From Hyalangium minutum (GTDB taxonomy: Bacteria > Myxococcota > Myxococcia > Myxococcales > Myxococcaceae): DNA of 64,000 bases. The stretch spans positions 310,001 through 374,000 of the forward strand of contig NZ_JMCB01000001.1 of NCBI RefSeq assembly GCF_000737315.1, in the 5' to 3' direction. A program made the position numbers and the translations under genes. Under the pieces are notes generated by a model. It did no database searches, was not told the origin of the DNA, and was given only the letters and a program-made list of their open reading frames with translations. This document shows positions 24,007-51,948 of the stretch, in pieces (within the stretch, counting starts at the first letter, position 1; each line of letters begins with the position of its first letter).

Positions 24007-24028
24007 GCCGCGTACCTCCCGCCTGTTG

Positions 24029-24943
24029 TTACAGCTTCACATTGGGAATGGACAGACAGCGGCTCCCGTCACCGTTGCACACCCGCAGGGTGTGCGGCTC
24101 CGTCAGCCGTGCTTCGGATTTCCTCATGGGCATCTCCAGTTCGACCGCCACACGCGTCGAGGCCCCCGAGGAAAGGATGGGTTGGCCCGAGAGCACCGCG
24201 CGAGCGCGTCGCGGAGCCCCGCCCGCCACAGGAATCACCTCCGCCCATGCAGGCGACCACGGCTCATCCGCCGTGTTGCTCACCTCGAAGACCATCAAGC
24301 TCCAGGTGGCCGCTCCCAACACCTCACACCCTTGCAGGTGAAGTGTGCCGCGCACCTTGCTGCACGCATCATTCAAGTCCTTCCCTTGAATACCGCTCCC
24401 GTCCATGCCCCCGGCGAGCATGAAGGCGGCCGGGCTCAGCGCCGCAGGCCGGGCCTTCAACGCCTCCAGTTCCTGACGCTGGGCCTCACACTGTCCTCGC
24501 AGGGCGGCCAGCTCCACGCGGCACGCCTCCCCAGACTGTTGAGGCCGAAGGACGTTCACCACCTCATCCCTCTGCCCCGGCTGCCCAGTGAGCAGGAACA
24601 CGGCGCTGGAAGGAATCCCCTCGCGATAGGTGACGCGCAGCGCGAGCCTCTCGGCGGGCCCTAACGCCACGGCGGGCGAGAGCGTGACGGTACGCTCCCC
24701 CACATCCACCACGGAAAAGCGGGCCCGGCCCTCCAGCTCGACTGCCTCACGCACCAGGGGAGCGTCGAGGAGGAGCACGGTCACGATGCCGGGAGCCAGA
24801 AAGATCAACGGCGCCTCGCCGGCCTTGCCTGTGAGCACGACGGAGCGCGGAGCAGAGTGTCCCACGGGTGCTGTCTGTGCTGTCGCGGCAAGGCCCACCA
24901 GCCACAATGCGAGCGCCAGAGACAATGTGTCGGGTCGGAACAA
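24029..24943 (-). CDS. DUF2381-family protein (myxobacterial kinase-associated)
   Basis: Signal peptide, IFLAPGIVTVLLLDAPL, LRVTYREG.P..AVFLL, coiled-coil linker, ends ..IPNVKL. Lies 22 bp upstream of the kinase. Confidence 0.75.
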   Translation of the reverse strand: MFRPDTLSLALALWLVGLAATAQTAPVGHSAPRSVVLTGKAGEAPLIFLAPGIVTVLLLDAPLVREAVELEGRARFSVVDVGERTVTLSPAVALGPAERLALRVTYREGIPSSAVFLLTGQPGQRDEVVNVLRPQQSGEACRVELAALRGQCEAQRQELEALKARPAALSPAAFMLAGGMDGSGIQGKDLNDACSKVRGTLHLQGCEVLGAATWSLMVFEVSNTADEPWSPAWAEVIPVAGGAPRRARAVLSGQPILSSGASTRVAVELEMPMRKSEARLTEPHTLRVCNGDGSRCLSIPNVKL

Positions 24944-25448
24944 TGGGGAGCCACCTCACGGGTAGGCCCCCACAGTAGCAGATGCGAGCGAACGCTCGCG
25001 GGCCGGGATTCGGAAGCACCGGCCACCCAGCGTCACCTACCGTACGCCCATCGATGCGGCTCACGCCGTCTTCACGCCGGCACGCCGGACCTGGATGGTC
25101 GTCGGCTCCTCGTCCATGCTCAAGGACTCCCAGGGCGCCAGAGGCTTTGACTCAGTGGAAGGCGGCGTCTCTGCCTCACCGCTCGGCTCCGTGAGTGGGG
25201 GAATCGTCTTCCCCATCGACGGATGCGCGCGGGATTTCATCGCGGGGGCCAGCAGCAACAGCGCCAAGGCAAGCTCAAGCGCAGCACCACTTCGTGACGG
25301 CCCGGACGGAACGCACCAAGAGCTCTCGGCAGGACTGAGCGGGTTGTGATGCCGCCTGCGCGCAGCATCGGCGTACTCCCTCTGGCTACTCAACGGCGGG
25401 GGGGCCGTCTGGATAATGCCTGTAACCACGCTGCAAGAGGAAACAGAC

Positions 25449-27056
25449 ATGAACACGATCAAGAAGGGGAGCCCGGCGCACCCAGCGAAGCTGCCGAGCC
25501 CTAGCAAGCCAACACCTGCCAAGCCGCATCAGGCGCCCAAGGGCGCGCCGCCCCCTGCTCCACCGGCCAAGGCCCGGACTCCTGTCCAGGGTGACAGATT
25601 CGAGGCCCCAGGGCCTCAAGTGCGCGCCGACAAGAAAGGGAAGACGATCGTGGATCTCGGCTCTGGCAACAACCACGCGACCGTTCGCCAGCAGAAGGAC
25701 GGCGGGTTGACGATCACCTCGGACGGCAAGACGGTGAAGCTCACCGCGCAGCAAGCTCAGAACATGGTCATCAATGGAGGCGCTGGCAACGACACCATCG
25801 TCGCGGACAAGAGCGTCAAGAAGGGGCTGCGCATCAATGGCGGCAGCGGCAATGACACGATTGTCGGTGGCAAGGGCAACGACCGGCTTTCGGGGGGCAA
25901 GGGCCATGACGTCCTGAAAGGCGGTCTGGGCAAAGACACGCTCTCCGGCGGCAGCGGCAAAGACAGGCTCTCCGGCGGCAGCGGCAATGACAAGCTCGTG
26001 GGCGGACAGGGCAAAGACACGCTCTCCGGCGGCAGCGGCCGTGACGTCCTGAACGGTGGCCAAGGCAACGATCGGCTCTCCGGCGGCAGTGGCAACGACA
26101 CGCTCATCGGAGGGAAGGGCCACGATCGGCTCTCTGGCGACAGCGGACATGACGTCCTGAGAGGCGACCGGGGCAACGACAGGCTCTCCGGCGGCAGTGG
26201 CAACGACACGCTCATCGGGGGCCAGGGTAACAGTCTGCTCTCCGGCGGCAGCGGCAACGACACACTCATCGGGGGGCAGGGCACCAATCGGCTCTTCGGC
26301 GACAGCGGCGACGACGTGCTCATCGGCGGCCAAGGCAACAACACGCTCTCTGGTGGCGACGGCAACGACGTGCTCCTTGGGGGCCAGGGTAACAATCTGC
26401 TCTCCGGCGGCAGTGGCAACGACACGCTCATCGGGGGGCAGGGCACCAATCGGCTCTTCGGCGACAGCGGCGACGACGTGCTCATCGGCGGTCAGGGCAA
26501 CAACACGCTCTCTGGTGGCGACGGCAACGACGTGCTCCTTGGAGGCCAGGGTAACAATCTGCTCTCCGGCGACAGCGGCGACGACGTGCTCCTCGGCGGC
26601 CAAGGCCACGACACACTCTCCGGCGGCGATGGCAACGACGTGCTCCTCGGCGGCCAAGGCGACGACACGCTCTCTGGCGGCAGTGGCGACGACGTGCTCC
26701 TCGGCGGCCGGGGCAACGACACGCTCTCCGGCGGCGATGGCAACGACGTGCTCCTCGGCGGCCGGGGCAACGACACGCTCTCCGGCGACAGCGGACATGA
26801 CGTACTCGTGGGTGGCCGAGGCAACGACACACTCTCCGGCGGCGATGGCAACGACGTGCTCCTGGGCGGTCGAGGCAACGACCGGCTCTCCGGCGGCAGC
26901 GGACATGACGTCCTCGCAGGCGGCCGAGGCAACGACGCACTCTCTGGCGGCGATGGCAACGACGTGCTCCTGGGCGGCCGAGGCAACGACACGCTCTCCG
27001 GCGGCAACGGCCATGACGTGCTTGTGGGTGGCCGAGGCAACGCCCGGCGCGCATAG
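25449..27056 (+). CDS. RTX/hemolysin-type Ca-binding repeat protein
   Basis: By my count 45 full GGxGxD-type nonapeptides, 44 of them contiguous, after a Pro/Lys-rich N-terminus. ATG 25449 with RBS AGAGGA. Confidence 0.92.
26217..26540 (+). repeat. 162-bp higher-order tandem duplication within the RTX array
   Basis: 26217-26378 and 26379-26540 encode near-identical 54-aa units (six nonapeptides each), including the distinctive GGQGTNRLF repeat. Confidence 0.9.
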
Positions 27057-27265: not shown

Positions 27266-28183
27266 ATGCAAAGTCCCAGCCCCGGCGAGACGCCTCAGCG
27301 CTCACAGGCAGACCGTCCCCCCCGCCTCCCACCGGGCATCGGCTTGTTCCGGCGCGCGTTGCGAGTGACGGAGCGGCTGTCACCTTCGCTTGCGGCAGAG
27401 TTCGCCCGGTTTCTGTTCTTCAAGCCCATGTCCTCGAGAGTCCGTGCCGAGGAACAGGCCGTGCTCACGGCCGGGCAGCGGTTCCATATCCCTGTCGAAG
27501 GAGGACGGGTGGCTGCCTGGAGCTGGGGGCAAGGCCCCGCAGTCCTGCTGTGCCATGGATGGGGCGGACACTCCGGCCAGATGGTGGCGCTCGTGCAGCC
27601 GCTCGTCTCCAGCGGTCACCGGGTGATCGCGGTGGACATGCCTGGACATGGCCAGTCCCAGGGCCAGCTCTCCAGCGTGCTCCACTTCGCGTGGGCCATC
27701 CGCGCGGCCGCGGACACGTGCGGCGGGTTTGCGGGCGTGGCTGCGCACTCTCTGGGCGCGGCCAGCACCGTCATCGCGTGCGCAGAGGGGCTCCGAGTAC
27801 CGCGTCTCGTCTTCTTCGCACCGCCGCTGGACTTTCAGGGCTTCTGGACCCGGTTTTGCGAGATGCTGGATGTAAGCCCAGCACTGTGGGCACGTATGCG
27901 CGAACTCTCCGAGCGGCGCACAGGCATCTCCTTCGATCAGCTCCTCCCGAAGACCCACGCCGCCAGGATGGAGGCGGATCTCCTCATCTTCCATGACGAG
28001 AGTGACCGGGAGATTCCGCTCGCCCAGGGAGAGGCGCTCGCACAGCTGTGGCGCGGTGCGGGGTTCGTGCGGACCCAAGGGCTGGGGCACCTGCGTCTCC
28101 TGAAGGATCCCGGCGTGGTGCAGCGCGCGGCGGACTTCCTGGCGGGAGCCGCTGCTCGCCCTGGAGGCGAGACGGCCGCGTGA
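27266..28183 (+). CDS. Alpha/beta-fold hydrolase
   Basis: VLLCHGWGG, AVDMPGHG, AHSLG nucleophile, FHDESD acid, GLGH catalytic His. Confidence 0.9.
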   Translation: MQSPSPGETPQRSQADRPPRLPPGIGLFRRALRVTERLSPSLAAEFARFLFFKPMSSRVRAEEQAVLTAGQRFHIPVEGGRVAAWSWGQGPAVLLCHGWGGHSGQMVALVQPLVSSGHRVIAVDMPGHGQSQGQLSSVLHFAWAIRAAADTCGGFAGVAAHSLGAASTVIACAEGLRVPRLVFFAPPLDFQGFWTRFCEMLDVSPALWARMRELSERRTGISFDQLLPKTHAARMEADLLIFHDESDREIPLAQGEALAQLWRGAGFVRTQGLGHLRLLKDPGVVQRAADFLAGAAARPGGETAA

Positions 28184-28283
28184 GCGTGGCAGCCTGATCA
28201 TCCGCCCAGGCCCGCAGCCTGTTGCGCTGGAGCCCCGGGCGCCCGCATCATGGGCGGTTGCCGCGTTCCGCCGAGAGGGTCCG

Positions 28284-29666
28284 ATGACACAACAGTCCGC
28301 CACCGCCAGCCTCCCGTTGCGGCCCAATCAGCGCCTGGGGCACATCCCCGGCGTGTCGGGTGTGCCCTTCCTGGGGGACACCCTCGAGTTCTTGAAGGAC
28401 CCCGTCCACTACAAGCTGCGCATGCATGAGCGCTTCGGGCCCGTGTTCCGGACCAGCATCCTCGGCGACCGCAGCCTCATCCTCGTCGGCCCCGAGCTGG
28501 CCGAGGAGGTCCTCCTGGACAAGGAGCGCAACTTCTCCAGCCAGTACGGCTGGCACCGGCTGATCGGCGACACCTTCAAGAACGGATTGATGCTGCGGGA
28601 CTTCGACGACCACCACACCCACCGCCGCATCATGAACGCCGCTTTCAAACCAGAGCCCATGCGCGCCTACGTCGAGGCGCTCAACCGTCATATCGAGCAG
28701 GGCATCGCCAGCTGGCACCGCCAGCCGGACTTCCGGTTCTACCCAGCCGTCAAGGCGCTCACCCTCACCTCGTCCGCGAAGACCTTCCTGGGGTTGGACC
28801 TGGCCTCGGAGATGGACACCCTCAACAAGGCCTTCATGGCGATGCTCGACGGCGCGACGGCGCTGCTGCGCTACCCGGTGCCGGGCACCCGGACGTGGTA
28901 CGCCCAGCGGGGCCGCCGCACGCTGGAGGACTTCTTCCGCTCGCTCATCCCCCAGCGCCGCCAGGGCAACGGGACCGACCTGTTCTCGCAGTGCTGCCGC
29001 GCCACCAGCGAAGAGGGCGAGGTCTTCAGCGATACCGACCTCGTCGACCACATGATCTTCCTCTTGATGGCGTCGCACGACACCACCACCAGCGTCCTCT
29101 CCAACGTGGCCTTCGGTCTCGCCAATCACCCGGAGTGGCAGGAGCGGATCCGCGCCCAGGTGATGGCCCTGGGCAATGAGCTCTCCTACGACGAGCTGGG
29201 GAGCCTGTCCGATGCGGATCTGGTGATGAAGGAGGTGCTGCGGCTGTATCCCCCGGTGATCGGGCTCCCGCGCCGTGTCATCCGGGAGTGCACGCTCGTG
29301 GGCCTCCAGATCCCCGCCAACACCAACATCTGGGTCAGCGTCGACGCGAACCACCGGCTCCCGAAATGGTGGAAGGATCCCGAGACCTTCGATCCAGGGC
29401 GCTTCTCGACTGAGCGTGCGGAGCATCAGCAGCACCGGTTCCTGTGGATGCCCTTCGGGGGCGGTGCCCACCGGTGCATCGGCATGAAGTTCGCCGAGCT
29501 CAACGTGAAGGCGTACCTCTTCCAGCTGCTGCGCCGGTACCGGCTGAAGCTGAGGGATGGCTACGTGCCGCTGGTGGACAAGTTCCCGTTCCCGAAGCCA
29601 GCCGAAGGGCTCCCGATGAAGCTCGAGCTCCTGGAGGGTGAGCCCCGCAGGGCCGCTTCCGCCTAG
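28284..29666 (+). CDS. Cytochrome P450
   Basis: I-helix ASHDTTT, K-helix EVLR, FDPGRF, heme motif FGGGAHRCIG. Confidence 0.96.
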   Translation: MTQQSATASLPLRPNQRLGHIPGVSGVPFLGDTLEFLKDPVHYKLRMHERFGPVFRTSILGDRSLILVGPELAEEVLLDKERNFSSQYGWHRLIGDTFKNGLMLRDFDDHHTHRRIMNAAFKPEPMRAYVEALNRHIEQGIASWHRQPDFRFYPAVKALTLTSSAKTFLGLDLASEMDTLNKAFMAMLDGATALLRYPVPGTRTWYAQRGRRTLEDFFRSLIPQRRQGNGTDLFSQCCRATSEEGEVFSDTDLVDHMIFLLMASHDTTTSVLSNVAFGLANHPEWQERIRAQVMALGNELSYDELGSLSDADLVMKEVLRLYPPVIGLPRRVIRECTLVGLQIPANTNIWVSVDANHRLPKWWKDPETFDPGRFSTERAEHQQHRFLWMPFGGGAHRCIGMKFAELNVKAYLFQLLRRYRLKLRDGYVPLVDKFPFPKPAEGLPMKLELLEGEPRRAASA

Positions 29667-29697
29667 TGGAGGAAGGGGCCCAGGCCCTGTCCGGTGG

Positions 29698-32600
29698 CTA
29701 CAGAAGCCCGAGCCGCTTCAGCTCCTGGGTGACCTGATCCTCGCTCATCCCCTCGACCTCGGCGGTGATCTTCTGCTGGCGCTCATCCACGAGCTCCTTG
29801 ATGCGCGCCGCCAGCACCGCCACCGTCGATCCCTGAAAGAACTCGGGGAGCCGCATGTCGATGTTGTAGTGCTGGTTGATGCGGTACAGGACACGGGTCG
29901 CCAAGAGGCTCTGGCCGCCCAGCTCGAAGAACTCCGCCTGCCGGTGGGTGGCCGGCACTTCCAGCACCTCACTGAACCATGCCGCGACGCGAATCTCGTC
30001 GCCGGTGCTCAGCGCCTCCTGAGGCCCCGTGGGAGCGGTGCCTGCGGAGCTCCTCTGCGCCAGCGCGGTTCGATCCACTTTGCCGTTCAAGGTCATGGGC
30101 ATCCGCTCCAGGTGCTCGATGTGCGGGATCATGTAGGAAGGCAGGTGCTTGCGCAGGTGGGCGAGGACCGTGCCCGTGGGAACCGGCTCGCCACTGGAGA
30201 CGAGGAAGGCCACGAGGCGGCTGCGCTCGGCTTCACCCTGCACGGCCACCACGGCCTCGGCGATGCCAGGCACCTCGGCCAGCCTTGCTTCCACCTCGCC
30301 GGGCTCGATGCGGTGTCCGCGCACCTTGACCTGATGGTCCTGGCGCCCGAGGAACAGCAGCTCACCGTCGTGCCGTTGCCGGACCCGATCTCCCGTTCGA
30401 TAGCACCGCTCCTGAGTGACTCCGAGCTCATCGATGCCCAGCGTCGGGAAGCGCTGCGCCGTGAGATCCTCGCGGCCGATGTAGCCTTGCGCGACGCCAT
30501 CCCCCGCGATGTAGAGCTCTCCCTCCACGCCGAGCGGAACGGGGCGCTGGTCCTCGTCCAGCACGTACAGCCGTGTGTTCTCGATGGGCTGGCCGAGCGT
30601 CACGCGCTGCTGGCCGTTGCCGAAGTACCTTCTGCTGGACCAGATGGTGGTCTCGGTAGGCCCGTACAGGTTCCACAGCGCCGCGGACTTTGGCATGAGC
30701 ACCCGGGCGAGCTCGTCGCTGAGCGCCTCGCCGCCACACAGCACCTTCAGCCCGGGGCTGCCTGTCCATCCATACTGGAGCAGCATGCGCCAGGTGGAGG
30801 GGGTGCCTTGCATCACCGTGATGCCGTCCGCCTCGAGGTAGCTCAGGAGTGCTTGTGCATCGCTCTGCTCCTCACGGGTGGCCACCCGTACCGTGGCGCC
30901 CACGGTCAGGGGCAGCAACAGCTCCAGGAGCGAGATGTCGAAGCTCAGCGAGGTGACGGCGAGCAGCCTGTCACTATGCTGCATCCCTGGGGCGCGGGCC
31001 ATGGCCCGCAGCAGGTTGACCAGGTTGTGGTGGCGCACGGCCACCCCCTTCGGCTGACCGGTAGACCCCGAGGTGAACATCACATACGCCACGTCCTCGC
31101 CGCGGTTGGGGTGGGGAGGGAAAGGCTCGGTCTGGGGGATGCCATCGTAGACGACGCGCACCGCCCCGCCAGGCACCTCCACCTCACCGGTGTCCGTCAC
31201 CACGTGGCGGGTGCCGGAGGCCTCGATCATGTAGCCGAGCCGGTTGCTGGGGAAGGCCGGGTCCAGCGGGACGAAGCCCGCGCCCGCCAGGAGGCTCCCG
31301 AGGATCGCCTCCACCATGCCCACGCTGCGCTCCATCTTGATGCCCACGAGGGAGCCCGGCCGGACACCTGCCTCGCAAAGACGGGCCGCGAAGCTCCCGG
31401 CATTCCGCAGGAGCTCGCCGTAGGTCCGGGAGTGGGGTCCGGACACCACCGCGATCTTGTCCGGCGAGCGCTGCGCCTGCCGCGCGATCAGCGCGTCCGC
31501 GCCGCCGGCCTCGTCCCACTGCTGGGCGGTGGCGTTCCACTCATTGCGGATACGTTGGACGGTGGAGGGGGCCAGCCGGGGGGCGTCCCGGAGAGGAAGG
31601 CTGGGGTGTGCAATGAGCCAGGGCACGAGCTGCAGCCACCGCTCCGAGAAGAGGCGGACGGTCTCCTCCTCGAAGAGGCGGGTGTTGTAGACGAAGAAGC
31701 TGGTGATCGCGCCCTGGCCGTCGCCGCCGGAGTAGTAATACTCCAGGTCGAACTGGCACTTCTTCGCATCGAGGTAGCGCTGCCGCAACGGCAGGCCGCG
31801 CTCCTCCACGTCAGCGGCGGGGATCTGTCCGAACAGGACCTGGAACACCGGGTTCCGGCTGGTGTCGCGCTCCAGCGCCAGGGACTCCACGATGCGATCG
31901 AAGGACAGGGAGGCATGTCCGAGCGCCTCGCGCAGCGTCCGGCCCACTTGGCTGATGAGCTGGACGAAGCTCATTCCCGGATCCGTCTCGAGCCGCAGCA
32001 CGAGGGTCGTCATCAAGCATCCGACGATGTCCTGCGCTTCCCGCGTCTCACGAGCGGCATAAGGGATGCCAGCCATGAGGTCCCGCTGCCGCGAGTGCTG
32101 ATGCAGGAACACCCCGAAGGCCGCGAGCAGGACCGTGAACACGGAGGTGCTGTTTTCCCGGGCGAAGCGCCTCAGGCCCTCCGATATCGCCTCGTCGAGG
32201 TCCGCGCGGACCTGGCCCCCGTCGTAGGTGAGGTGGCGTGGCCGCTCCTGATCGTAGGGCAGCGAGAGGACCGGCGGGTTGGCCAGCCGCTGGCGCCAGT
32301 AGCGCAGCTCCTCGGCCAGCGTCTCGGGGTTCCTCAGACGCTCCGCGCGGAGGAAGGACACGATGGACGGTGCGGTTCCAGGCAGCTCCTCCCCGGCGTA
32401 GAGCAGCCCGAGGTCGCGCATCATCTGCCGGATCGACCACCCGTCTCCGATCAGGTGATGGAGTGACAGGCCGAGTTGCTGGCTGCCGTCGGGCGCGCGG
32501 AACAGGAAGACCTTGAACAAGGGAGCCTTGTCCATGCGGAACGGCCGGACCAGGTGCGTGCGAACCATGTCCTCGCGTGCACGCGGCTCGTGCGGCAGGA

Positions 32601-33015
32601 GGACCGTCTCGACCGGGATGTTGATCCGCGCCTCGAACATCTGGATGGGGATGCCCTCCAGACTGGGGAAGCTGGCGCGCAGCGCCAGATGCCGGGAAGC
32701 CAGCGCCTCGAAGGCTTGCTGCAGCCGGTGCGGATCAGTGCCGGCGGGTACGTCGAAGAGAAAGGGAATGGTGTAAGCCGTGGACTCGGGGGCGTACTGC
32801 GAGATGAACCAGATGCGCTTCTGCACGCCGCTGAGCCACGCGGCGTGCCGATCGCCCAGCAGCTCGAGGATCCGCGCCTTGTTCGTGGAGAGGAAGGACC
32901 GCTCGCCGTCCGAGAGCTTCCCCGACACCTTCTTGAAGCCGAGACGGCCACCGTCTACCCACAGCTCGACGCCAGAGTTGATCAACTGACCGAGCGAACC
33001 CTCGAACTCAGACAT
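29698..33015 (-). CDS. Single-module NRPS: TubC_N-type docking - C - A(Gly) - PCP - C-terminal docking helix, no TE
   Basis: N-terminal GVELWVDGGRLGF..., HHLIGDG, YVMFTSGSTGQPKG, NLYGPTETT, YRTGD, QVKVRGHRIE, NGKVDR, PCP FFELGGQSL. Specificity residues read by eye as DILQLGLIWK (Gly code). Confidence 0.95.
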   Translation of the reverse strand: MSEFEGSLGQLINSGVELWVDGGRLGFKKVSGKLSDGERSFLSTNKARILELLGDRHAAWLSGVQKRIWFISQYAPESTAYTIPFLFDVPAGTDPHRLQQAFEALASRHLALRASFPSLEGIPIQMFEARINIPVETVLLPHEPRAREDMVRTHLVRPFRMDKAPLFKVFLFRAPDGSQQLGLSLHHLIGDGWSIRQMMRDLGLLYAGEELPGTAPSIVSFLRAERLRNPETLAEELRYWRQRLANPPVLSLPYDQERPRHLTYDGGQVRADLDEAISEGLRRFARENSTSVFTVLLAAFGVFLHQHSRQRDLMAGIPYAARETREAQDIVGCLMTTLVLRLETDPGMSFVQLISQVGRTLREALGHASLSFDRIVESLALERDTSRNPVFQVLFGQIPAADVEERGLPLRQRYLDAKKCQFDLEYYYSGGDGQGAITSFFVYNTRLFEEETVRLFSERWLQLVPWLIAHPSLPLRDAPRLAPSTVQRIRNEWNATAQQWDEAGGADALIARQAQRSPDKIAVVSGPHSRTYGELLRNAGSFAARLCEAGVRPGSLVGIKMERSVGMVEAILGSLLAGAGFVPLDPAFPSNRLGYMIEASGTRHVVTDTGEVEVPGGAVRVVYDGIPQTEPFPPHPNRGEDVAYVMFTSGSTGQPKGVAVRHHNLVNLLRAMARAPGMQHSDRLLAVTSLSFDISLLELLLPLTVGATVRVATREEQSDAQALLSYLEADGITVMQGTPSTWRMLLQYGWTGSPGLKVLCGGEALSDELARVLMPKSAALWNLYGPTETTIWSSRRYFGNGQQRVTLGQPIENTRLYVLDEDQRPVPLGVEGELYIAGDGVAQGYIGREDLTAQRFPTLGIDELGVTQERCYRTGDRVRQRHDGELLFLGRQDHQVKVRGHRIEPGEVEARLAEVPGIAEAVVAVQGEAERSRLVAFLVSSGEPVPTGTVLAHLRKHLPSYMIPHIEHLERMPMTLNGKVDRTALAQRSSAGTAPTGPQEALSTGDEIRVAAWFSEVLEVPATHRQAEFFELGGQSLLATRVLYRINQHYNIDMRLPEFFQGSTVAVLAARIKELVDERQQKITAEVEGMSEDQVTQELKRLGLL

Positions 33016-36000
33016 ACCCGTCCTCCCCCTCGTCAGCAGCGGCTGTCTCTGCGGGCACTCCGAGGGAGATGAGCTCCGTCAGCCGCCCGGCAGCCTGCTG
33101 GATCGTCAGCTCCTCCAGGGGAACGTCCATGGGGATCTTCACGCTGAAGCGAACCTCCAGCGCGTTTCGCAGATCGAGCGCCACGAGTGAGTCGACACCC
33201 AGCTCGTACAAAGTGTGCTGTGGCGAGATGCGCTCCCGGTCGATCCGCAGTGTCGCCGCCAGGGCCGCGCTCAGCGCCTCTTCCACCTCCGGGGTCTCCC
33301 GGGTCTCCGCGGTTCCGCCGGGGGCAGGTGCACGCACGGGGGTTGCCGTGGCTGTGGCGGTGGGCTTCGGGCTCGTCTTGGAAGCCGTACACACGCTGGT
33401 GATGACCTGCTGCCCGAGCCGGTCGGCTCCTTCTCCCGCGACCGAGCGCGCCGACTGGAACCTGCGCTGGCCGAGCATCTGGCGCCAGGAGTCGAAGGAG
33501 AGCCCCGGTGAACCCGGGATGCGGACCTCCGGATCACGGAAGCGCCACCAGCCGTCGAGGAGGCCGAAGGTCAACGTGGTGAAGGGCGACGCCGAGCAGA
33601 TCTCGTTCAGCACCAGCACGCCGCCCGCCGTCATCAGCGTTGCCACGTGCTCGAGGGTCCGGCGGATGTCCGTGGTGGCGTGAAGCACGTTGGAGGCAAT
33701 GACCACGTCGTAGTGGCTGATCGGGACCTCACGCTGGGCGGCCGGATCGCGCTCGATGTCCAGCAAGGCCCAGGACAGATAGGATGCGCGTTCGGCGAAG
33801 CGCTCGGCGAAGTTCCGGAACCCGAGGGACACGTCCGTGTAGGTATAGGAGATGCGGCCCGCGTGCGGCGCGAGGCGATCGATGATGCCCGCGGTCGTTC
33901 CGCCCGTGCCCGCTCCGATCTCGAGCAGGTGGACGGTCCCGCCGTCCGGGAGCTGAGCGAGCCTGGCAAGCACGGCTTTCTCGACAGCCTCCGCAGTGCG
34001 TGCGTTGAAGAAGTCCGCGATGGGGTTGCCGCGATAGACGTTCTCGACGAGGCTCATCGCGCCATCGGGGAACAGGACATGCGTGGCGGGGAGCTCGCCC
34101 CGCAGGACCGGGCTCAGGTGGCTGAGGCACCGTTGCAGCAGGTCGAGCGCTGCATTGGCCGGACCTGGCTGCGCAGCTGCGGGCTGCCCCACCAGCCGGA
34201 TGGCGCCGCCCGTCTCCTCGACGTGACCTGCGGCGCGCAGAATGTCCAGCACCGCCGTGAGGAGGCGCTCATACTTCGGCTGCACGCCGAGCCGTGTGGC
34301 CAGCTCGCCCGAGGAGATGGGCTCTCTGAGGCCGAGCTCCGACAATGCCAGGAAGGTCCGCTGGACGATCAGCTGACGTTGGATCCGCTCCTGCTCAGCG
34401 TACAGGGCTGTGAGGGCGGCGGTCTCGGTGGGGCGCTCAGCCAAGGTCTCGACGGGGTTCTTCCACGAGCGCGGCTGCTCGAACGCCCAGTAGCGGTGGT
34501 CCTCGAAGGGGTAGGACGGAAGGCCCATCCTCAGCGGGCGCCCATAGGGATACAGCAGAGCCCAGTCAACCTCGGTGCCCTGGACCCAACGCCGGCACCA
34601 CACCTCGGGAGCGTCCTCGAGGCGTGGAGGGGACTCTGGAGAGGCCGGTGGCGCACCCGCGTTTCCGTGCACGGCGAGCGGCCCCGGTTTGCCGGCCAAC
34701 CAGCCCGAGAGCACGTCAATGACATCCGCGATGCTCTGGACGGGGCTGGCGAGACGTGCGGGGAGCGGCTCACGGCCCACCTGCAGGGTGTAGATCAGCG
34801 ACAGAAGGCCGCCCTCATCGTGGGGAGAGAGGCCGATCGGGCGTGGTGCGCGGCCCTCGAGCAGGGACAGGAGGTCGCGGCACCGCGCGCGGAGGGTCAC
34901 ATCGTTTGCCGCCGACAGCACGAGACAGTGCGCACGGTGGCCAGTGCCAGGCGTGGCCTGCGGGCCGCTGGCCTCGGCAGGAGGATCTCCCAACACCACG
35001 TGGGCGTTCACGCCTCCGAACCCGAAAGAACTCACGCCGGCCACTCGGTCTCCAGCGGGCCACTGCACGGGCTTGCCGATCAAGAAGAGCGGCGAGCCAT
35101 CGAGCCGCAGGCGCGAGTTCGGCTTCTCGAACCCCTGCAGCCCCACCCTCTTGCCATGGCCCAGGCAGAGCAGGACCTTCACCACGCCTGCGATACCCGC
35201 CGCGGCCTCCAGGTGGCCGAGGTGCGTCTTGACCGCTCCAAGGCCTACGGAGCCAGGCGCGAGCTCTACACCGTGCTCACGCGCCAGAGCGGAGAGCGCC
35301 CTTTTCAGGCCCGCGATCTCGATCGGGTCCCCAAGCGGCGTACCTGTGCCGTGGGTCTCCACATAGGACACCCGGTCTGGTGGGATGCCGGCGTCCCGGA
35401 AGGCCTCTGCGATGACGGAAGACTGCGAATAGGGATTGGGAGAAGTCACCGTGGGGGCGGCCCCTCCGTGGTTCATCGCGGATCCGTACACGGTCCCGTA
35501 GATGCGATCCCCGTCTGCTCGCGCCTGCGCCAGCGGCTTGAGCAGGAGCATCGCAGCGCCCTCACCGCGCACGTATCCGTCGGCGCCTTCATCGAAGGTC
35601 CGGCACCGCCCCCGAGGCGACAGCATGCCGGCCCGCGAGAAGCAGATCCCCGGCGCGGGGATGAGGTTGAGGTTGACCCCGCCCACGAGCGCCTGCTCGC
35701 ACTCACCCAGGCGGATGTCCCGCACCGCTCTGTGGAGCGCCACCAGGGAGCTGGAGCACGCGGTGTCGATGGCGAGGCTCGGCCCCTTGAAGTTGAAGAA
35801 GTAGGAGATGCGGCTGGTGACGAACGAGGCGGCGGCGCCCAGCGCCGTGTAGCCCTCGGCCGGGCTGCTGGAGGCCTCCAGCAGCGGCCTCCAGTCCTGG
35901 CTGGAGGCACCGACGTAGACACCCACCGCCTTCCCGCGCAGGCTGGACGGTGTGTGGGCGGCATCCTCCAGGCACGCCCAGGCCAGCTCCAGCATGATCC

Positions 36001-36280
36001 GGTGGTGCGGATCCATCCAGCCGGCTTCGCGGCCGGTGATGTGGAAGAAGGGCGCGTCGAACCGGTCCACGTCGTCCAGATACGAGCCGGGCTGCGAACC
36101 GTTCTCGGACTCGATGCTGCGGACAGTGCTCCAGTACCAGCGCTCCGCGGGCGTGAGCCTGATGAGGTCCGTCTCGTTCAAGAGGTTGGCCCAGAACGCA
36201 TGTTGGTCCGGGGCCGACGGGAACCGGCAGGCGAGGCCCACGATGGCGATGGCGCCATCCGTGCCTCGGGGTCGCGTCAC
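33008..36280 (-). CDS. AT-less (trans-AT type) PKS module: KS - C-methyltransferase - ACP
   Basis: KS triad DTACSSS / HGTGT / HLGH, GVSSFGFGG, flanking subdomain joined directly to the LPSYPF..RYW linker with no GHSxG AT, SAM motif LLEIGAGTGG, ACP LGVDSL. Confidence 0.93.
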   Translation of the reverse strand: MTRPRGTDGAIAIVGLACRFPSAPDQHAFWANLLNETDLIRLTPAERWYWSTVRSIESENGSQPGSYLDDVDRFDAPFFHITGREAGWMDPHHRIMLELAWACLEDAAHTPSSLRGKAVGVYVGASSQDWRPLLEASSSPAEGYTALGAAASFVTSRISYFFNFKGPSLAIDTACSSSLVALHRAVRDIRLGECEQALVGGVNLNLIPAPGICFSRAGMLSPRGRCRTFDEGADGYVRGEGAAMLLLKPLAQARADGDRIYGTVYGSAMNHGGAAPTVTSPNPYSQSSVIAEAFRDAGIPPDRVSYVETHGTGTPLGDPIEIAGLKRALSALAREHGVELAPGSVGLGAVKTHLGHLEAAAGIAGVVKVLLCLGHGKRVGLQGFEKPNSRLRLDGSPLFLIGKPVQWPAGDRVAGVSSFGFGGVNAHVVLGDPPAEASGPQATPGTGHRAHCLVLSAANDVTLRARCRDLLSLLEGRAPRPIGLSPHDEGGLLSLIYTLQVGREPLPARLASPVQSIADVIDVLSGWLAGKPGPLAVHGNAGAPPASPESPPRLEDAPEVWCRRWVQGTEVDWALLYPYGRPLRMGLPSYPFEDHRYWAFEQPRSWKNPVETLAERPTETAALTALYAEQERIQRQLIVQRTFLALSELGLREPISSGELATRLGVQPKYERLLTAVLDILRAAGHVEETGGAIRLVGQPAAAQPGPANAALDLLQRCLSHLSPVLRGELPATHVLFPDGAMSLVENVYRGNPIADFFNARTAEAVEKAVLARLAQLPDGGTVHLLEIGAGTGGTTAGIIDRLAPHAGRISYTYTDVSLGFRNFAERFAERASYLSWALLDIERDPAAQREVPISHYDVVIASNVLHATTDIRRTLEHVATLMTAGGVLVLNEICSASPFTTLTFGLLDGWWRFRDPEVRIPGSPGLSFDSWRQMLGQRRFQSARSVAGEGADRLGQQVITSVCTASKTSPKPTATATATPVRAPAPGGTAETRETPEVEEALSAALAATLRIDRERISPQHTLYELGVDSLVALDLRNALEVRFSVKIPMDVPLEELTIQQAAGRLTELISLGVPAETAAADEGEDGYV

Positions 36281-37227
36281 TTGGCCACCGCGCGCGTGGT
36301 GATCTCGCGGATGAGCTCACCAATCATGCCCATCTCGGGCTGCTTGCCGGTGACGAAGACCTTGCCGGGCACATCCACGAAGTGCACCTTCCGCTGGTTC
36401 GTCTGAACGGTGCACAGGTGCGTGGCGTACGGCGAGTCCTGCTGGATCTCCTTGTGGTACTGCGCCTCCTCACCCGCGGCGATGACCTCAATGACGCCGC
36501 GGTACAGGGCCGGCTTGTACGCCAGCATGGCCTCCAGGCCCGCGTTGTACACGTTGACGCGGTGGCGGAAGAGAAGCTCCTCCTGATCCGTCTTGAGGTA
36601 GCCGTGCTTGCGCAGGAGATCCAGGAAGACGTCGATCTGGATCGAGTCGTCCTTGCTCAGGACCTCCTCGATCGGGAAGCCCTCCATGGAGTTACCGAGA
36701 AACTCGTCGAACACGAACATGAAGTCCTGGACGACGCGCTTGCGGGGGGACTCCAGGTGGGCCAGCTCCGTCCACTGGCGAGGGAAGAGCGGGAGGAAGT
36801 CGAGGCAGAGGGCAACCTGCTTGCCGCGGTCCTGCAGCTGCTTACAGATCTCGTAACAGACGAGGCCTCCGTTGCAGAAGCCGCCAATGTAGTAGGGGCC
36901 CTCTGGCTGGATCTCGAGGATCCGCTTCACGTCGAAGGCGGCGATCTCCTCGATGGTCCGGTAGGGCTGCTGCTCGCCCTCCAGGCCTGGAGTCTGGCAC
37001 CCGTACATGGACCAGTCCTCTGGGAGGTACGGCAGGTAGTTGCGGAGGTAGTTCACAGTGCCATCAGTGGCAGGGCAGAAGAACAGGATGGGCGCTCCTG
37101 GTGCTCCCTGGCGCAGCAGCACCATGGTGTCTGTCTTCTTCGGGTTCGGCTTGAACTTGAGGTAGTGCTCCAGGAGCATCGCCTTCTTCTGCTCAGTGGA
37201 CAGGCTCTGGTTCTGCTCTGCGGTCAT
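36277..37227 (-). CDS. Stand-alone thioesterase-fold protein with Cys at the nucleophile position and an N-terminal docking-like helix
   Basis: PILFFCP, YGCQTPGLEGE..PYRTIEEIAA, GPYYIGGFCNGG (GxCxG). ATG 37227 with RBS GGAGG; GTGA overlap with the PKS start. Confidence 0.82.
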   Translation of the reverse strand: MTAEQNQSLSTEQKKAMLLEHYLKFKPNPKKTDTMVLLRQGAPGAPILFFCPATDGTVNYLRNYLPYLPEDWSMYGCQTPGLEGEQQPYRTIEEIAAFDVKRILEIQPEGPYYIGGFCNGGLVCYEICKQLQDRGKQVALCLDFLPLFPRQWTELAHLESPRKRVVQDFMFVFDEFLGNSMEGFPIEEVLSKDDSIQIDVFLDLLRKHGYLKTDQEELLFRHRVNVYNAGLEAMLAYKPALYRGVIEVIAAGEEAQYHKEIQQDSPYATHLCTVQTNQRKVHFVDVPGKVFVTGKQPEMGMIGELIREITTRAVAK

Positions 37228-37504
37228 GCTTCCTCCGTTGGCCACTCTGCTGACGGCGCAAACGTCGGCCATCATACTATGGCGATGCGGATCACGCTGA
37301 TCGGCGCGGTGTGCCACGCCTGCTTTCAGAGAACCTGTGACGGCGGGTCGTTACCGACCATGCATGCGTGGCCAAGAGGCACGAGCGGGCGGATCCGTCC
37401 GCGAAGGCTTGTGCCTGATCACGACAACGGGTGAGAGACCTTCCAGGTCTGACGGCGTGCTGGAGCACGCCCTCCAAGCCGGGAGAGCGGCTACAGTCCG
37501 CGCC

Positions 37505-38281
37505 ATGGAGACGAACGGGCCGGTTCCCTGCACCGTGAAGGAGTTCCAACCGCAGCGCGGCTTCGGGACGCTCGTCCTGGAGGACGGCCGGGAGCTACCG
37601 TTCGACATCTCGGTGTCTTGGAAGCGCGAGCTCTCCGCAGGGACACGGTGCCTGGCCACGCTAGCGGCCCGGCCCACGGGGCTCCGGGTGGTGCTGCTCC
37701 AGCCCGAGCCTCCCCCCGGCATCACGCTGGAGGAAGGCATCGCGCAGTTCCACGCCTGGGGGCTTCTCACCGAGTGGGACGCACGGACGTGCCGCGAGCG
37801 ACTGCCCTCGCTGCCCCTGCGTGGCGCCACGGAGCTCACCGGCGGCAGGCCGCGGCCTCCAGGGCCTCCGCCCACGGAGCTGAGCCCCGACGACGCGGCG
37901 GTGCTACTGCTCGACTACTACGGCGAGGGCTTGTCGGCGCGAGCCCGGGCGGACCGCACCTTCTTCATACCCTCGGTGGACACCCACTCCCGCTACGCCA
38001 AGGCGCTGGGCGAGGGGCTGCTCGTCCTCATCGGCGAGCCCGGCTTCCTCACCCTCAAGCTCAAGAGCGCGCACACCGGCGTCATCGTAGACCGCTCGGG
38101 CCAGAAGCACGACGTGCGGGTGGGGCACGGCGACACCGTTGTCCTCGTCGTCAACCGGCTGCTGGAGGCCGAGGGCGCCCCAGGCCGCCTCCACCAGAAG
38201 AAGCTCTTCGGGACGCCGTGGCTCACGTTCCGCGAACAGTCACGGCGGCCCACCGGAGTCGTCGCCGCGCTCCTCACGTGA
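37505..38281 (+). CDS. Hypothetical protein with N-terminal cold-shock-like OB-fold
   Basis: TVKEFQPQRGFGTLVLEDGRELPF resembles the CSD G.VK.F....GFG.I.....D.F pattern; the remainder is unassigned. Confidence 0.55.
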   Translation: METNGPVPCTVKEFQPQRGFGTLVLEDGRELPFDISVSWKRELSAGTRCLATLAARPTGLRVVLLQPEPPPGITLEEGIAQFHAWGLLTEWDARTCRERLPSLPLRGATELTGGRPRPPGPPPTELSPDDAAVLLLDYYGEGLSARARADRTFFIPSVDTHSRYAKALGEGLLVLIGEPGFLTLKLKSAHTGVIVDRSGQKHDVRVGHGDTVVLVVNRLLEAEGAPGRLHQKKLFGTPWLTFREQSRRPTGVVAALLT

Positions 38282-41677: not shown

Positions 41678-41914
41678 TTTTATCCTTGACTCAGACCCGC
41701 AAAACATTCAAATACCGTAAATCACCATAGGGCTAGATTCCGGGGACATCTACCCAGCCATCCTGGTGCGCTGCGTCGCAGAGGGGACTGGATGGGGTGA
41801 ACGTCGGCCTGCCTCAGGTTGCACATCATTGATGCTCGCAGCCCGACGCCTGTTGCGAACGCCTCTTCAGGCGTGATGACACACTTTACCCATTGTCTCA
41901 TCCAGGCAGGATTT

Positions 41915-44900
41915 ATGCTCTATCTCAAACACTCCAGACGCATCCTCCATGCCGCATGTGCAAGTCTATTCCTCACGAGCGCGTGCAGCCCAGCAGGGGG
42001 TTCTCCTGACGGGCAAGACATTGCGCCGCCGGGAGGGAGGCTCTCCACGCAAAGCGCGTCATTGGCCTCGACCCTCCTCTCCGCGGGCAAGCCTGCCTCC
42101 GCCAGCAGCAACAACTCTCCTTACACCGCGAGCAACCTCACCGACGGCAACCAGAACTCCTATTGGGAGTCGACCAATGGGGCTTTCCCCCAGTGGGCGC
42201 AGATCGACCTGGGCTCGGCCGCGACCGTCGAGGACCTCGTCTTGCGGCTCCCGGCGGGCTGGGGTTCTCGTAACCAAACCCTCTCCGTCCAGTCCTCCAC
42301 CGACGGCTCCTCATTCACCACCCTCGTGGCGAGCGCGTCCTATGCGTTCAATCCGTCCACGAGCAACACCGTGACGATCGACGTCCCGGACACGTCCGCG
42401 CGCTACGTGCGCGTCACCATCACCGCCAACACGGGCTGGAGCGCCGGCCAGCTCTCCGAGCTCGAGGTCCGCGGCACCACCACCACCACCCCGCCGACCG
42501 ACCCGCCTCCGCCCACCGGCAGCAACCTCGCCCTCGGCAAGCCCATCACGGGCTCCTCGACGGAGTATTTGTTCGTAGCCACCAACGCCAACGACAACAG
42601 CACGGACACGTACTGGGAGGGCGCGGGAGGCCAGTACCCGAGCCACCTGACCGTCTCGCTCGGCACGAGCGTGGACCTCTCGGGCGTCGTCCTCAAGCTT
42701 CCGCCGGCCTCCGCCTGGGCGACTCGCACCCAGACCTTCGAGATCCAGGGCCGCAGCCAAGCCAGCGGCTCCTTCACCACGCTCAAGGCCTCCGCGGCGT
42801 ACACGTTCAACCCCGCGACGGGGAACACGGTCACCGTGCCCGTCACCGGCACCGCCGCCGACGTCCGCGTCGTCTTCACGGGCAACACCGGCTCCGGGAA
42901 CGGCCAGGCCGCCGAGTTCCAGATCTACGGCAGCCCCACGGCAAACCCCGACCTCACGGTCACTGCGGTCACCGCCACTCCCAGCTCGCCGATCGAGTCC
43001 GACTCGATCACGCTGACGGCCACGGTGAAGAACATCGGCACCCGGACGTCGGCGGCGACGACTGCCGCCCTCACCGTTGACGGCACACGGCTCGCCACAG
43101 CCAGCGTTGCCAGCCTCGCGGCGGGTGCGACCACGACCGTGTCGGCGTCGATCGGCAAGAAGACCGCCGGGTCCTACACCATCGGTGCCATCGCGGATCC
43201 CGACGGCACGGTCGTCGAGCAGAACGAGAGCAACAACGCGTTCAGCAACCCGACCAAGCTCACGGTGTCGGAGGCTCCCGGGCCCGACTTGCAGGTGCTG
43301 AGCATCAGCTCGAACCCCGCGAACCCGGCCGTCGGGGCACCGGTGACGTTCAGCGCGGAGGTGAAGAACCGCGGGACCACGGCGACCGGGGTGGCCACGG
43401 TCACCCGTATCGTGGTGGGCACCAGCACGCTCAACGCCAGCACCCCGGCCATCGCCGCCGGCGCGACCGTCTCCGTGACGACCAGCGGCAGCTGGACCGC
43501 CACGAGCGGGGGAGCCACGGTCACTGCCACCGCCGATGCAACCAGCGTCGTCGCCGAGACGCGCGAGGACAACAACACCTTCTCGCAGTCGATCGTGGTC
43601 GGGCGCGGGGCGGCGGTCCCCTGGGTCTCCTACGAGGCCGAGGCCGGCCGCTACCAAGGCACCCTGCTGGAGACGGACGCCCTGCGGACGTTCGGGCATA
43701 CCAACTTCGCCACCGAGTCCTCGGGCCGCAAGTCCGTGCGCCTGAACAGCACCGGCCAGTACGTCGAGTTCACCTCGACCAACTCCACGAACTCGATCGT
43801 CGTGCGCAACTCCATCCCCGACGCACCGGGCGGGGGCGGCCAGAGCGCCACGATCAGCCTGTACGCCAATGGCACCTTCGTGCAGAAGCTCACGCTCTCT
43901 TCGAAGCACAGCTGGCTGTACGGGAACACCGACGGCCCGGAGGCACTGACCAACTCGCCCCAGGCCGACGCGCGGAGGCTGTTCGACGAGTCGCAGGCGC
44001 TGCTCGCGCAGACCTACCCGGCCGGGACCGTCTTCCGCCTGCAGCGAGACGCGACGGACACGGCCACGTACTACATCATCGACGTGATCGATCTCGAGCA
44101 GGTGGCCCCGCCGCTGAGCAAGCCCTCCGAGTGCACCTCGATCACGAACTACGGCGCGGTGCCGAACGACGGCATTGAAGACACGGATGCCCTCCAGCGG
44201 GCGGTGACGGACAACCAGAACGGCGTCATCAGCTGCGTGTGGATCCCCGCGGGGCAGTGGCGGCAGGAGAAGAAGATCCTCACCGACGACCCGCTGAACC
44301 GCGGGATGTACAACCAGGTGGGCATCCGGAACGTGACGATCCGCGGCGCGGGCATGTGGCACTCCCAGCTCTACGCCACGATCGAGCCGCAGAACCAACC
44401 GACCAGCATCAACCACCCCCACGAGGGGAACTTCGGCTTCGACATCGACGACAACGTGAAGATCTCCGACATCGCGATCTTCGGCTCCGGCCGCATCCGG
44501 GGCGGCGACGGCAACGCCGAGGGAGGCGTCGCCCTGAATGGCCGGTTCGGCAGGAACACGCGGATCACCAACGTGTGGATCGAGCACGCCAACGTGGCGG
44601 TCTGGGTGGGCCGTGACTACGACAACATCCCCGATCTGTGGGGCCCGGCGGACGGGCTGCAGTTCAGTGGCATGCGCATCCGCAACACCTATGCGGACGG
44701 CATCAACTTCAGCAACGGCACGCGGAACTCGCAGGTGTTCAACTCGTCGTTCCGCACCACCGGTGACGACTCCCTGGCGGTCTGGGCCAACCCCTACGTC
44801 AAGAATCCCTCGGTGGACATCGCCCACGACAACCACTTCGTCAACAACACGGTCCAGCTGCCCTGGCGGGCGAACGGCATCGCGATCTACGGCGGCTACG

Positions 44901-49908: not shown

Positions 49909-49952
49909 AACTGGAGAGGGAGATGAACGGGTGGAACCGAGAGCCAGGGCTC

Positions 49953-50753: not shown

Positions 50754-51178
50754 AGCCGCGTGGCCTCGGGGGCCACGTCCTTCTCGATGTTGAGGGCGAA
50801 CTTCGCGATGCCCTGGCCCTTCACCACGTCGATGAGGTGCATGACCCGGCCATAGGGCAGCGACTGGTCCGCGCTGATGATGGCGCGCGTGTCCTTGTCC
50901 TTGGACACCGCCTCGCTGATCTTCCTCGACAGCTCGTCCTCACGGACCTCGGTGCCGTCGAAGAACAGCTTGCCTTCCTTGTCGAGCACCACGTTGACGA
51001 GCCCCTGCACCGTCTCTCCGCCGTTGGCGGCGCGAGGCAGATCCACCTCGACCGTCTCGCGAACGATGAAGTTGGCCGTCACCATGAAGATGATGAGCAG
51101 CACCAGGACGACGTCCACCAACGGCGTGACGTTGATGCCGGTGATCTCGTCCTCGTTCTCCGCGGCTCCGCCGGCCAT
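50750..51178 (-). CDS. exbD: ExbD/TolR biopolymer transporter
   Basis: EITGINVTPLVDVVLVLLIIFMV, VDLP, ISAD..LPYG.V..LID. Confidence 0.93.
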   Translation of the reverse strand: MAGGAAENEDEITGINVTPLVDVVLVLLIIFMVTANFIVRETVEVDLPRAANGGETVQGLVNVVLDKEGKLFFDGTEVREDELSRKISEAVSKDKDTRAIISADQSLPYGRVMHLIDVVKGQGIAKFALNIEKDVAPEATRL

Positions 51179-51180
51179 GA

Positions 51181-51855: not shown

Positions 51856-51948
51856 TGTGGTTTTCCTCACGTACCGCGTGGATACGAAGGGAACACCGCC
51901 CCCCGGGCGAAGTGTCACCGGGGTCATGCAGGGGAGCCCCGGAGGGGC

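Follow-up and report, generated by a model that had tools for sequence, protein, structure and literature searches.

We analysed a 64,000-nt stretch of the Hyalangium minutum contig NZ_JMCB01000001.1 (the window; G+C content about 68%; all coordinates below are window positions), which harbours a compact hybrid locus of a polyketide synthase (PKS), a non-ribosomal peptide synthetase (NRPS) and a discrete cysteine-type thioesterase (TE). Three long open reading frames (ORFs) with a coding-like G+C bias of the codon positions lie on the reverse strand between 29698 and 37317, accompanied by two genes on the forward strand:

37227 to 36277, reverse strand: TE gene, 316 aa, ATG start
36280 to 33008, reverse strand: PKS gene, 1090 aa, GTG start
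33015 to 29698, reverse strand: NRPS gene, 1105 aa
28284 to 29666, forward strand: cytochrome P450 gene (PF00067, E 3e-66), convergent with the NRPS gene
27266 to 28183, forward strand: gene for a serine alpha/beta-hydrolase (Pfam Abhydrolase_1/6; AHSLGA, HG, D and H motifs)

A preliminary description of this DNA had noted three overlapping genes in the order TE, PKS and NRPS. ORFs, translations and Pfam matches all agree with this order, and the genes are translationally coupled. TE and PKS overlap by 4 nt (GTGA), PKS and NRPS by 8 nt (ATGTCTGA), and both overlaps are kept in the closest long relative, a metagenome contig of the Myxococcaceae (L055) whose PKS is 78% identical. The proposed TE start at 37227 could also be confirmed by a GGAGGA ribosome-binding site upstream of the ATG and by the identical 316-aa start of the orthologs.

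The term three-protein assembly line fits the core, whereas the cassette shared with the closest relative comprises five genes. DNA homology to L055 runs from 27289 to 37228, which is exactly the five genes, and the flanks are unrelated. All five genes are under purifying selection in this comparison, with ratios of non-synonymous to synonymous substitutions (dN/dS) of 0.13 to 0.30 (TE 0.13, Ser-hydrolase 0.27, P450 0.30) and the strongest constraint on the TE. The P450 has an intact heme motif (FGGGAHRCIG) and ExxR motif and is likely a tailoring enzyme. Both P450 and Ser-hydrolase accompany the trio in L055, the Ser-hydrolase being kept in this relative only. At their cut-offs, no NCBIfam equivalog model matched any of the five proteins. 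The stop codons of the convergent P450 and NRPS genes are 31 bp apart (29667-29697), and the spacer contains a short GGGCC..GGCCC palindrome. A simple terminator scan made no call in this spacer, and a promoter/terminator scan of 26.9-38.5 kb returned nothing above shuffled expectation.

Across the rest of the window, which carries transport, TonB/Exb, glycosidase, RTX, protease and regulator genes, we found no other PKS, NRPS or acyltransferase (AT) gene. The same holds for AT or further PKS genes within 10 kb on either side of five orthologous loci (L053, L054, L055, L056 and L057). Because of these empty surroundings at all five loci, the unit is an autonomous cassette and not the visible fragment of a bigger cluster, and its AT must come from elsewhere.

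Domain content of the PKS and the NRPS

The two megasynthase genes, both on the reverse strand, are divided into the following features:

34961 to 36253, reverse strand: ketosynthase (KS), residues about 10-440, with C175, H310 and H356
34421 to 34960, reverse strand: KS-flanking linker without AT (KAsynt_C_assoc, RhiE-like linker, LPSYPFE motif)
33401 to 34420, reverse strand: C-methyltransferase (cMT; PF08242, E 3e-16), S-adenosylmethionine (SAM) motif LLEIGAGTGG, SNVLHAT
33071 to 33301, reverse strand: acyl carrier protein (ACP; PF00550, E 3e-12), LGVDSL, Ser1031
33011 to 33034, reverse strand: acidic C-terminal short linear motif (SLiM) DEGEDGYV of the PKS
32842 to 33015, reverse strand: N-terminal beta-hairpin docking domain (TubC_N; PF18563, 26.6 bits) of the NRPS
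31546 to 32841, reverse strand: condensation (C) domain with intact HHLIGDG
30061 to 31518, reverse strand: adenylation (A) domain, code DILQLGLIWK (Gly)
29791 to 30003, reverse strand: peptidyl carrier protein (PCP) with intact LGGQSL
29701 to 29748, reverse strand: C-terminal tail MSEDQVTQELKRLGLL of the NRPS, putative partner of the N-terminal helix of the TE

The PKS had been read as KS-cMT-ACP without AT, ketoreductase (KR) or dehydratase (DH), and Pfam bears this out. Matches were obtained for the N- and C-terminal KS domains (E 4e-81 and 2e-31), the linker families PF16197 and PF22336, Methyltransf_12 (E 3e-16) and PP-binding; AT (PF00698), KR, DH and enoylreductase (ER) gave no Pfam match. 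The catalytic motifs of KS, cMT and ACP listed above are intact, and the KS has no N-terminal docking region. Orthologs with 78-87% and with 50-52% identity show an identical domain architecture, and the next-best database matches are AT-less multimodular PKSs. In a distance-based neighbour-joining (NJ) tree of 123 KSs, which carries no support values and is indicative only, the KSs of the window clade (the window PKS and its orthologs) nest among AT-less KSs that start the subunits of trans-AT PKSs. The earlier designation as trans-AT therefore stands in part: an integrated AT is missing and the KS falls among trans-AT KSs, but no discrete AT was found in the 64 kb or in the flanks of the orthologs. 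We infer from this combination that the AT is supplied from elsewhere.

For the NRPS, Pfam detects TubC_N (26.6 bits at a cut-off of 26), Condensation (E 2e-76), AMP-binding (E 7e-83) and PP-binding. No Pfam match to a TE, reductase (R) or terminal C domain was obtained, so that the protein is, as proposed, a C-A-PCP module without TE and offers no alternative release domain. The Stachelhaus positions, read by alignment to GrsA, spell D-I-L-Q-L-G-L-I-W-K. This code is identical in 10/10 positions to that of the Gly-incorporating module Bat2mod1 of kalimantacin biosynthesis (PMC4831472), which confirms the Gly assignment.

Sister family, docking elements and the Cys-thioesterase

A search with the TE yielded 15 word-sharing homologs among 5.8 billion proteins. 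In an exhaustive 50%-identity library the discrete TE family amounts to about six cluster representatives, matches with lower scores being generic TE domains, and a scan of 185,579 species genomes gave 48 loci. Corallococcus sp. ZKHCc1 1396 and C. sicarius have only the three core genes in common with the window (PKS about 50% identical), and their trio is followed by the gene of a cytochrome-c protein.

A sister family of clusters (L001, L007-L028) is present in more than 20 genomes of Chondromyces, Nannocystis, Polyangium, Hyalangium, Lentzea and Streptomyces. Its genes are colinear in the order PKS-NRPS-TE (e.g. L001:2180-10981, L009:1889-10831 and L019:1813-10804). The NRPS consists of docking domain-C-A-PCP with an HHxxxDG motif and an A code that is DILQLGLIWK or a close variant such as DILALGLIWK and DILAWGLIWK, and the TE is likewise a Cys-TE without His. 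The PKS is built as ACP-KS-AT-AT-ACP. This is the rare mixed loading/extension architecture of SalA and LctA, for which a His or Gln at the malonate-binding Arg position of AT1 has been reported (PMC11730586). In Chondromyces, the first AT has a His or Gln at this position, and the specificity motifs of AT2 are unusual in the sister family (VASH, PIHC, SHC). A P450 gene, following the trio in actinomycetes, is the sole recurrent accessory gene. The conserved antisense ORFs of the sister family had no Pfam match and are probably spurious.

The KSs of the sister family sit with cis-AT KSs in the NJ tree, apart from the window clade. Since the window KSs group with trans-AT and the sister KSs with cis-AT enzymes while the back end is common, it appears from these comparisons that a Gly-NRPS and Cys-TE back end is shared and that the PKS front end was exchanged between cis-AT and trans-AT types. 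Neither front end has reductive domains, and both should therefore deliver an unreduced beta-ketoacyl chain.

The docking elements point to the direction of flow. The acidic end DEGEDGYV of the PKS had been quoted correctly (full tail ...AADEGEDGYV-COOH), and a terminus of the form [DE][DE]G-x-x-[VL]-COOH is kept in 14 family PKSs of both clades, reading ...DEGEDGYV or ...EEGHV in the window clade and ...MEEGEL or ...LEEGSL in the sister clade. The partner that beta-hairpin docking domains bind is a short, charged tail at the C-terminus of the upstream carrier protein; the PKS tail, with fewer than 15 residues, fits this SLiM class (PMC9113145). The TubC_N-like start that had been proposed for the NRPS is supported not only by PF18563, but also by a profile of the family NRPS N-termini, which matches the solved docking domains of AerJ (E 4.7e-13), TubC (E 2.2e-11), Bamb_5915 (E 2.7e-9) and EpoB (E 6e-8). 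We regard the binding of the PKS tail to this domain as putative.

At the other end of the NRPS, the string EVEGMSEDQVTQEL given before as its end is present near the terminus, but the actual terminus is ...QELKRLGLL*. All family NRPSs carry the tail motif [ML]S[ED][ED][EQ]xxxxLxxL (LSDEEAAALL in Streptomyces). The TE in turn starts with a helix, predicted at residues 11-23 in the AlphaFold2 (AF2) model, and the sequence LSTEQKKAMLL was found as described at residues 9-19. Its motif LSxxxK+xLLxxYL/LL occurs in all family members regardless of gene order (sister-clade version LSDTKRLALLRLL). Hence, both clades have kept all three terminal docking elements. The order PKS to NRPS to TE is unambiguous in the sister family, since its genes are colinear and a loading ACP stands first in its PKS. 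Together with the docking domain and the conserved tails and helix, this supports the flow PKS to NRPS to TE that had been suggested for the window; in the window clade the TE gene has simply been shifted to the head of the operon.

The TE shows four features of interest:

36277 to 37227, reverse strand: stand-alone protein of thioesterase fold with Cys nucleophile, without canonical His (PF00975, E 6e-19)
37159 to 37203, reverse strand: N-terminal helix LSTEQKKAMLLEHYL, residues 9-23, putative docking element
36865 to 36885, reverse strand: nucleophile elbow GGFCNGG (Cys118), aligned with the nucleophile Ser of the fatty acid synthase (FAS) TE
36358 to 36378, reverse strand: VDVPGKV loop at the place of the canonical PGxH His loop, without His

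Besides the Pfam match, a profile comparison with the human FAS TE (E 1e-19) and Foldseek assign the protein to the alpha/beta-hydrolase TE fold with a helical lid. The best Foldseek matches of the AF2 model (pLDDT 81.6) are the TE domains of Pks13, AB3403 and human FAS, with a probability of 1.0 and TM scores of 0.6-0.7. Cys118 and the GFCNG elbow are invariant in the family members examined (14/14 and 24/24). The loop reads VDVPGKVF in the window TE, and a His is absent here in 24/24 family members; the nearest out-group Cys-type TEs (GFCNG...) retain PG[SNDT]H. The Cys is thus the sole triad residue conserved in all members, and the catalytic base of this TE family may have moved. Concerning the label Cys-thioesterase, the Cys nucleophile holds, but the protein is not an ordinary hydrolase because the canonical His is missing.

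The acid position after strand beta6 is Asp143 (LCLDFLP) in the window clade. At this position (window 36790-36810) the other clades have His (Chondromyces, Lentzea and Streptomyces), Asn (Nannocystis) or Gln (Polyangium and Hyalangium). A further residue, His157, was found in the window clade only. Two ideas about the active site were dropped. That most Cys-type TEs lack the His proved to be an artefact of the hidden Markov model (HMM) alignment, as the sequences show PGxH in the out-group and its loss in the trio-associated family only. Cys77 (YGCQTPG) was considered as a second catalytic Cys; it is not invariant, being replaced by L, I or V in Lentzea and Hyalangium.

Proposed biosynthesis and rival explanations

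With a probability of about 60%, we read the locus as a self-contained Myxococcaceae cassette, consisting of the three-gene core, the P450 and the Ser-hydrolase, that makes a small polyketide-glycine hybrid. In the scheme outlined here, the steps from condensation to loading of the TE follow from the domain content, whereas AT supply and KS priming are our suggestions. The ACP of the PKS would be malonylated by an AT encoded elsewhere, as none lies nearby. The KS, having no dedicated loading module, would be primed with a short acyl unit from acyl-CoA or acyl-ACP or by decarboxylative self-priming. Claisen condensation would give a beta-ketoacyl-ACP, which the cMT would methylate at C2 and which would leave the module unreduced as 2-methyl (or dimethyl)-3-oxoacyl-ACP. 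Once the acidic PKS tail has docked on the beta-hairpin domain at the start of the NRPS, Gly-S-PCP would be acylated with the 2-methyl-3-oxoacyl chain by the C domain. The TE would then be recruited through contact of its N-terminal helix with the C-terminal helix of the NRPS, and the chain would move to Cys118 as a thioester.

For the release, we propose an intramolecular cyclisation with formation of a C-C bond. Three points argue for a cyclising rather than a hydrolytic release, with a product of the tetramate or the gamma-lactam/beta-lactone type: the TE has no His to activate water, the acyl-enzyme would be a thioester, and two unrelated front ends preserve the beta-keto group. Two routes may be envisaged. 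Dieckmann closure, which is the commonest fate of beta-ketoacyl-aminoacyl intermediates, would lead to a pyrrolidine-2,4-dione (tetramate) with a quaternary and non-enolisable C3, owing to the alpha-methyl group. Alternatively, an aldol reaction as in SalC/LctC, in which the Gly alpha-carbon attacks the C3 ketone, would yield a gamma-lactam with optional beta-lactonisation. P450 and hydrolase would then modify the product, whose class, a tetramate or a related heterocycle, we infer from this chemistry.

Several observations weigh against this reading. No AT or loading function was found in the 64 kb or beside the five orthologs, and the assembly line cannot run on the genes of the cassette alone. 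The Corallococcus orthologs have neither the P450 nor the hydrolase. The alpha-methyl group makes a classical enolisable 3-acyl-tetramate impossible. Moreover, a non-canonical His could still serve in catalysis, the candidates being His157 of the window clade and, for part of the sister family, His143.

A bolder version of the cyclising release holds that the trio-associated Cys-TEs are a new class of off-loading cyclases, His-less and equipped with a docking helix, which as analogues of SalC/LctC or TrdC make a gamma-lactam(-beta-lactone) or a quaternary tetramate. We rate this as doubtful. If true, evolution would have joined a common back end to two kinds of front end, cis-AT (SalA-like) and trans-AT (KS-cMT-ACP), and cyclases non-homologous to SalC/LctC and TrdC would turn alpha-branched beta-ketoacyl-glycyl thioesters into glycine-derived warheads.

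The most serious rival is a hydrolytic or otherwise non-cyclising release, which we consider unlikely. It would set free a linear N-(2-methyl-3-oxoacyl)glycine, or a primary beta-keto amide together with glyoxylate if the P450 hydroxylated the Gly at its alpha-position. The latter has a parallel in the MtaG module of myxothiazol, where glycine is a sacrificial nitrogen donor. The type-I TE fold, the presence of a Ser-hydrolase and a P450 within the cassette, the retained Asp143 of the window clade and the existence of clade-conserved His residues would all suit such a release. They are opposed by the missing canonical His in all 24 family members, by the Corallococcus orthologs, which keep the trio without P450 and hydrolase, and by the retention of the beta-keto group through two unrelated PKS front ends, which suggests that it is needed in the release.

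A reversed order of NRPS to PKS to TE, following the logic of althiomycin and reutericyclin, is improbable. Here, N-acylation of the Gly by a starter C domain would be followed by malonate extension on the KS and methylation by the cMT, and the TE would lactamise the chain to an N-acyl-3-methyl-pyrrolidine-2,4-dione or a pyrrolinone. This would account for the absent PKS loading module, and the gene order TE-PKS-NRPS is non-colinear under either flow. However, the docking domain of the NRPS calls for a SLiM at the C-terminus of an upstream carrier protein, and the PKS offers exactly such a conserved tail, while its KS lacks an N-terminal docking region. The tail of the NRPS and the helix of the TE co-occur throughout the family, and the sister PKS has its own loading ACP and AT in genes arranged colinearly as PKS-NRPS-TE.

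We give just as little weight to the trio being the terminal part of a split pathway, in which the KS would receive a longer chain from upstream PKS subunits or from a loading enzyme whose genes lie elsewhere. The clustering of this KS with the N-terminal KSs of trans-AT PKS subunits and the lack of any AT or loader would fit. On the other hand, at least five genomes or metagenomes keep the trio as an isolated unit whose flanks are unrelated and hold no PKS gene over 10 kb on either side, and the sister family is self-contained and bimodular. Least probable is that the Cys alpha/beta-hydrolase shuttles acyl or aminoacyl groups, as SyrC, CmaE and the Cys-type type II TE (TEII) of WS9326A do, instead of releasing the product: Cys-type alpha/beta-hydrolases with transacylase function are known according to references cited in PMC10956176, and the TE lacks the canonical His, but it is the last gene of the colinear sister family, putatively docks to the last carrier protein, and has neither a second carrier protein as destination nor another conserved release function beside it.

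Comparison with known systems, neighbouring genes and significance

The docking domain at the start of the NRPS and the acidic upstream tail are shared with TubB-TubC, EpoA-EpoB, AerJ, Bamb_5915 of enacyloxin and Kj12 of rhabdopeptide biosynthesis. In contrast to these SLiM/beta-hairpin pairs, the partner in the window is the ACP of a lone AT-less PKS module, and the interaction is a predicted one. With Bat2 module 1 of kalimantacin the window shares the identical 10-residue code and the insertion of Gly in an AT-less PKS context, but kalimantacin is made by a 12-module line with trans-ATs in the cluster.

TrdC, NcmC and BpdE are discrete Cys alpha/beta-hydrolases, which release beta-ketoacyl-aminoacyl thioesters by Dieckmann cyclisation (PMC10956176). 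Like these enzymes and SlgL, all of them Dieckmann cyclases of tetramate pathways, the window TE is a free-standing alpha/beta-hydrolase with a Cys nucleophile that acts after a terminal C-A-PCP bearing a beta-ketoacyl-aminoacyl thioester. It differs in belonging to the PF00975 type-I lineage, in the N-terminal docking helix, in the alpha-methylated substrate and in the triad: of Cys-Asp-His, it has Cys and Asp but not the canonical His. A homology to TrdC and NcmC, the latter built of an alpha/beta core and a four-helix bundle, was rejected, as NcmC (6E6Y) is neither among the 56 sequence matches at E<=1 nor among the top 50 Foldseek matches. The amino acid of tirandamycin is Gly.

In the salinosporamide and lactacystin systems, Cys-dependent cyclases release the alpha-substituted beta-keto-acyl-aminoacyl chains of the SalA/LctA type as gamma-lactams, and an alpha-branch is the rule (PMC11730586). 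SalA/B/C and LctA/B/C/D resemble the window in having one non-reducing PKS module for an alpha-substituted beta-oxoacyl unit, one amino-acid module, a P450 and a Cys-dependent cyclase. The front end ACP-KS-AT-AT-ACP, however, is common to these systems and the sister family only, whereas the window PKS is KS-cMT-ACP without AT and loading ACP. Further differences are the C domain on the NRPS behind a docking domain, Gly as amino acid and a releasing enzyme that is TE-fold and not KS-like; a KS-like cyclase gene of the SalC/LctC type was not found in the 64-kb window.

Strained rings are also made by the Cys-TE domains of obafluorin and sulfazecin biosynthesis (PMC6668435, PMC11298585). ObiF1 (beta-lactone) and SulM (beta-lactam) share the type-I TE fold and the Cys in place of Ser with the window TE and catalyse a non-hydrolytic strained-ring release, but they are cis domains of pure NRPSs, whereas the window TE is discrete and has no His at that position. 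The TE domains of ObiF1 and SulM retain the catalytic His.

Two other candidates were rejected. The myxofacycline (iso) cluster has nine genes and four modules, including an A-less NRPS module with an aminotransferase (PMC9298251), an architecture unlike the domain content found here. Thiotetronate (thiolactomycin, tlm) clusters were considered in view of the Lentzea relatives; the C domains of the family carry HHxxxDG and are not of the heterocyclisation (Cy) type, and the A codes are Gly-like and not Cys. The architecture had not been recognised as that of a characterised cluster, and our searches of NCBIfam and the open literature likewise gave no characterised counterpart.

The genes around the cassette form the following surroundings:

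22228 to 24943, reverse strand: DUF2381 protein beside a 592-aa Ser/Thr kinase
25416 to 27056, forward strand: 546-aa protein consisting nearly entirely of RTX calcium-binding nonapeptide repeats (20 stretches, E 6e-157)
37337 to 38281, forward strand: 314-aa ORF with coding-like G+C content at third codon positions (GC3)
41819 to 45352, forward strand: 1177-aa alpha-1,3-glucanase (CatAgl D1/D2) with two CARDB and two F5/8-type-C domains
47188 to 54135, reverse strand: operon of a TonB_C+Plug protein, a second TonB, ExbD and ExbB

The RTX protein gene adjoins the cassette directly and is not kept in L055. On the other side, the 314-aa ORF is divergent from the TE gene across a 110-bp spacer; it had no Pfam or NCBIfam match and is not conserved beside the orthologous clusters. 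In the alpha-1,3-glucanase gene the GC3 is very high (0.92) and the GC skew is the most negative of the window; its product may be a fungal cell-wall hydrolase related to predation. The TonB/Exb operon is preceded by the gene for a 728-aa caspase-domain (Peptidase_C14) protein. Genomes of the Myxococcus type typically pair DUF2381 with a Ser/Thr kinase, a hallmark of the Myxococcales that agrees with the taxonomic placement.

AT-less KS-cMT-ACP modules, SLiM/beta-hairpin docking, Gly modules and Cys-type TE-fold enzymes are each known individually. Three aspects are apparently new, having no match in NCBIfam and the open literature: a lone trans-AT-type module without loader that feeds a Gly module, a dedicated subfamily of docking-helix Cys-TEs that lost the catalytic His, and a common back end on which cis-AT and trans-AT front ends were apparently exchanged.

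With a size of about 10 kb the cassette is among the smallest conceivable hybrid PKS/NRPS lines, so that its expression and in-vitro reconstitution should be easy. It offers a tractable system for the priming of an AT-less, loader-less PKS module, and its two distinct docking junctions in a compact set (SLiM/beta-hairpin and helix-helix to a trans TE) would be useful for engineering. Its TE belongs to a family of TE-fold enzymes in which Cys is the only triad residue left and product release probably proceeds by C-C bond formation. Our searches found no assigned product for this family, although it extends to more than 20 myxobacterial and actinomycete species. The compound may be a reactive heterocycle of small size, or it may serve as a signal.

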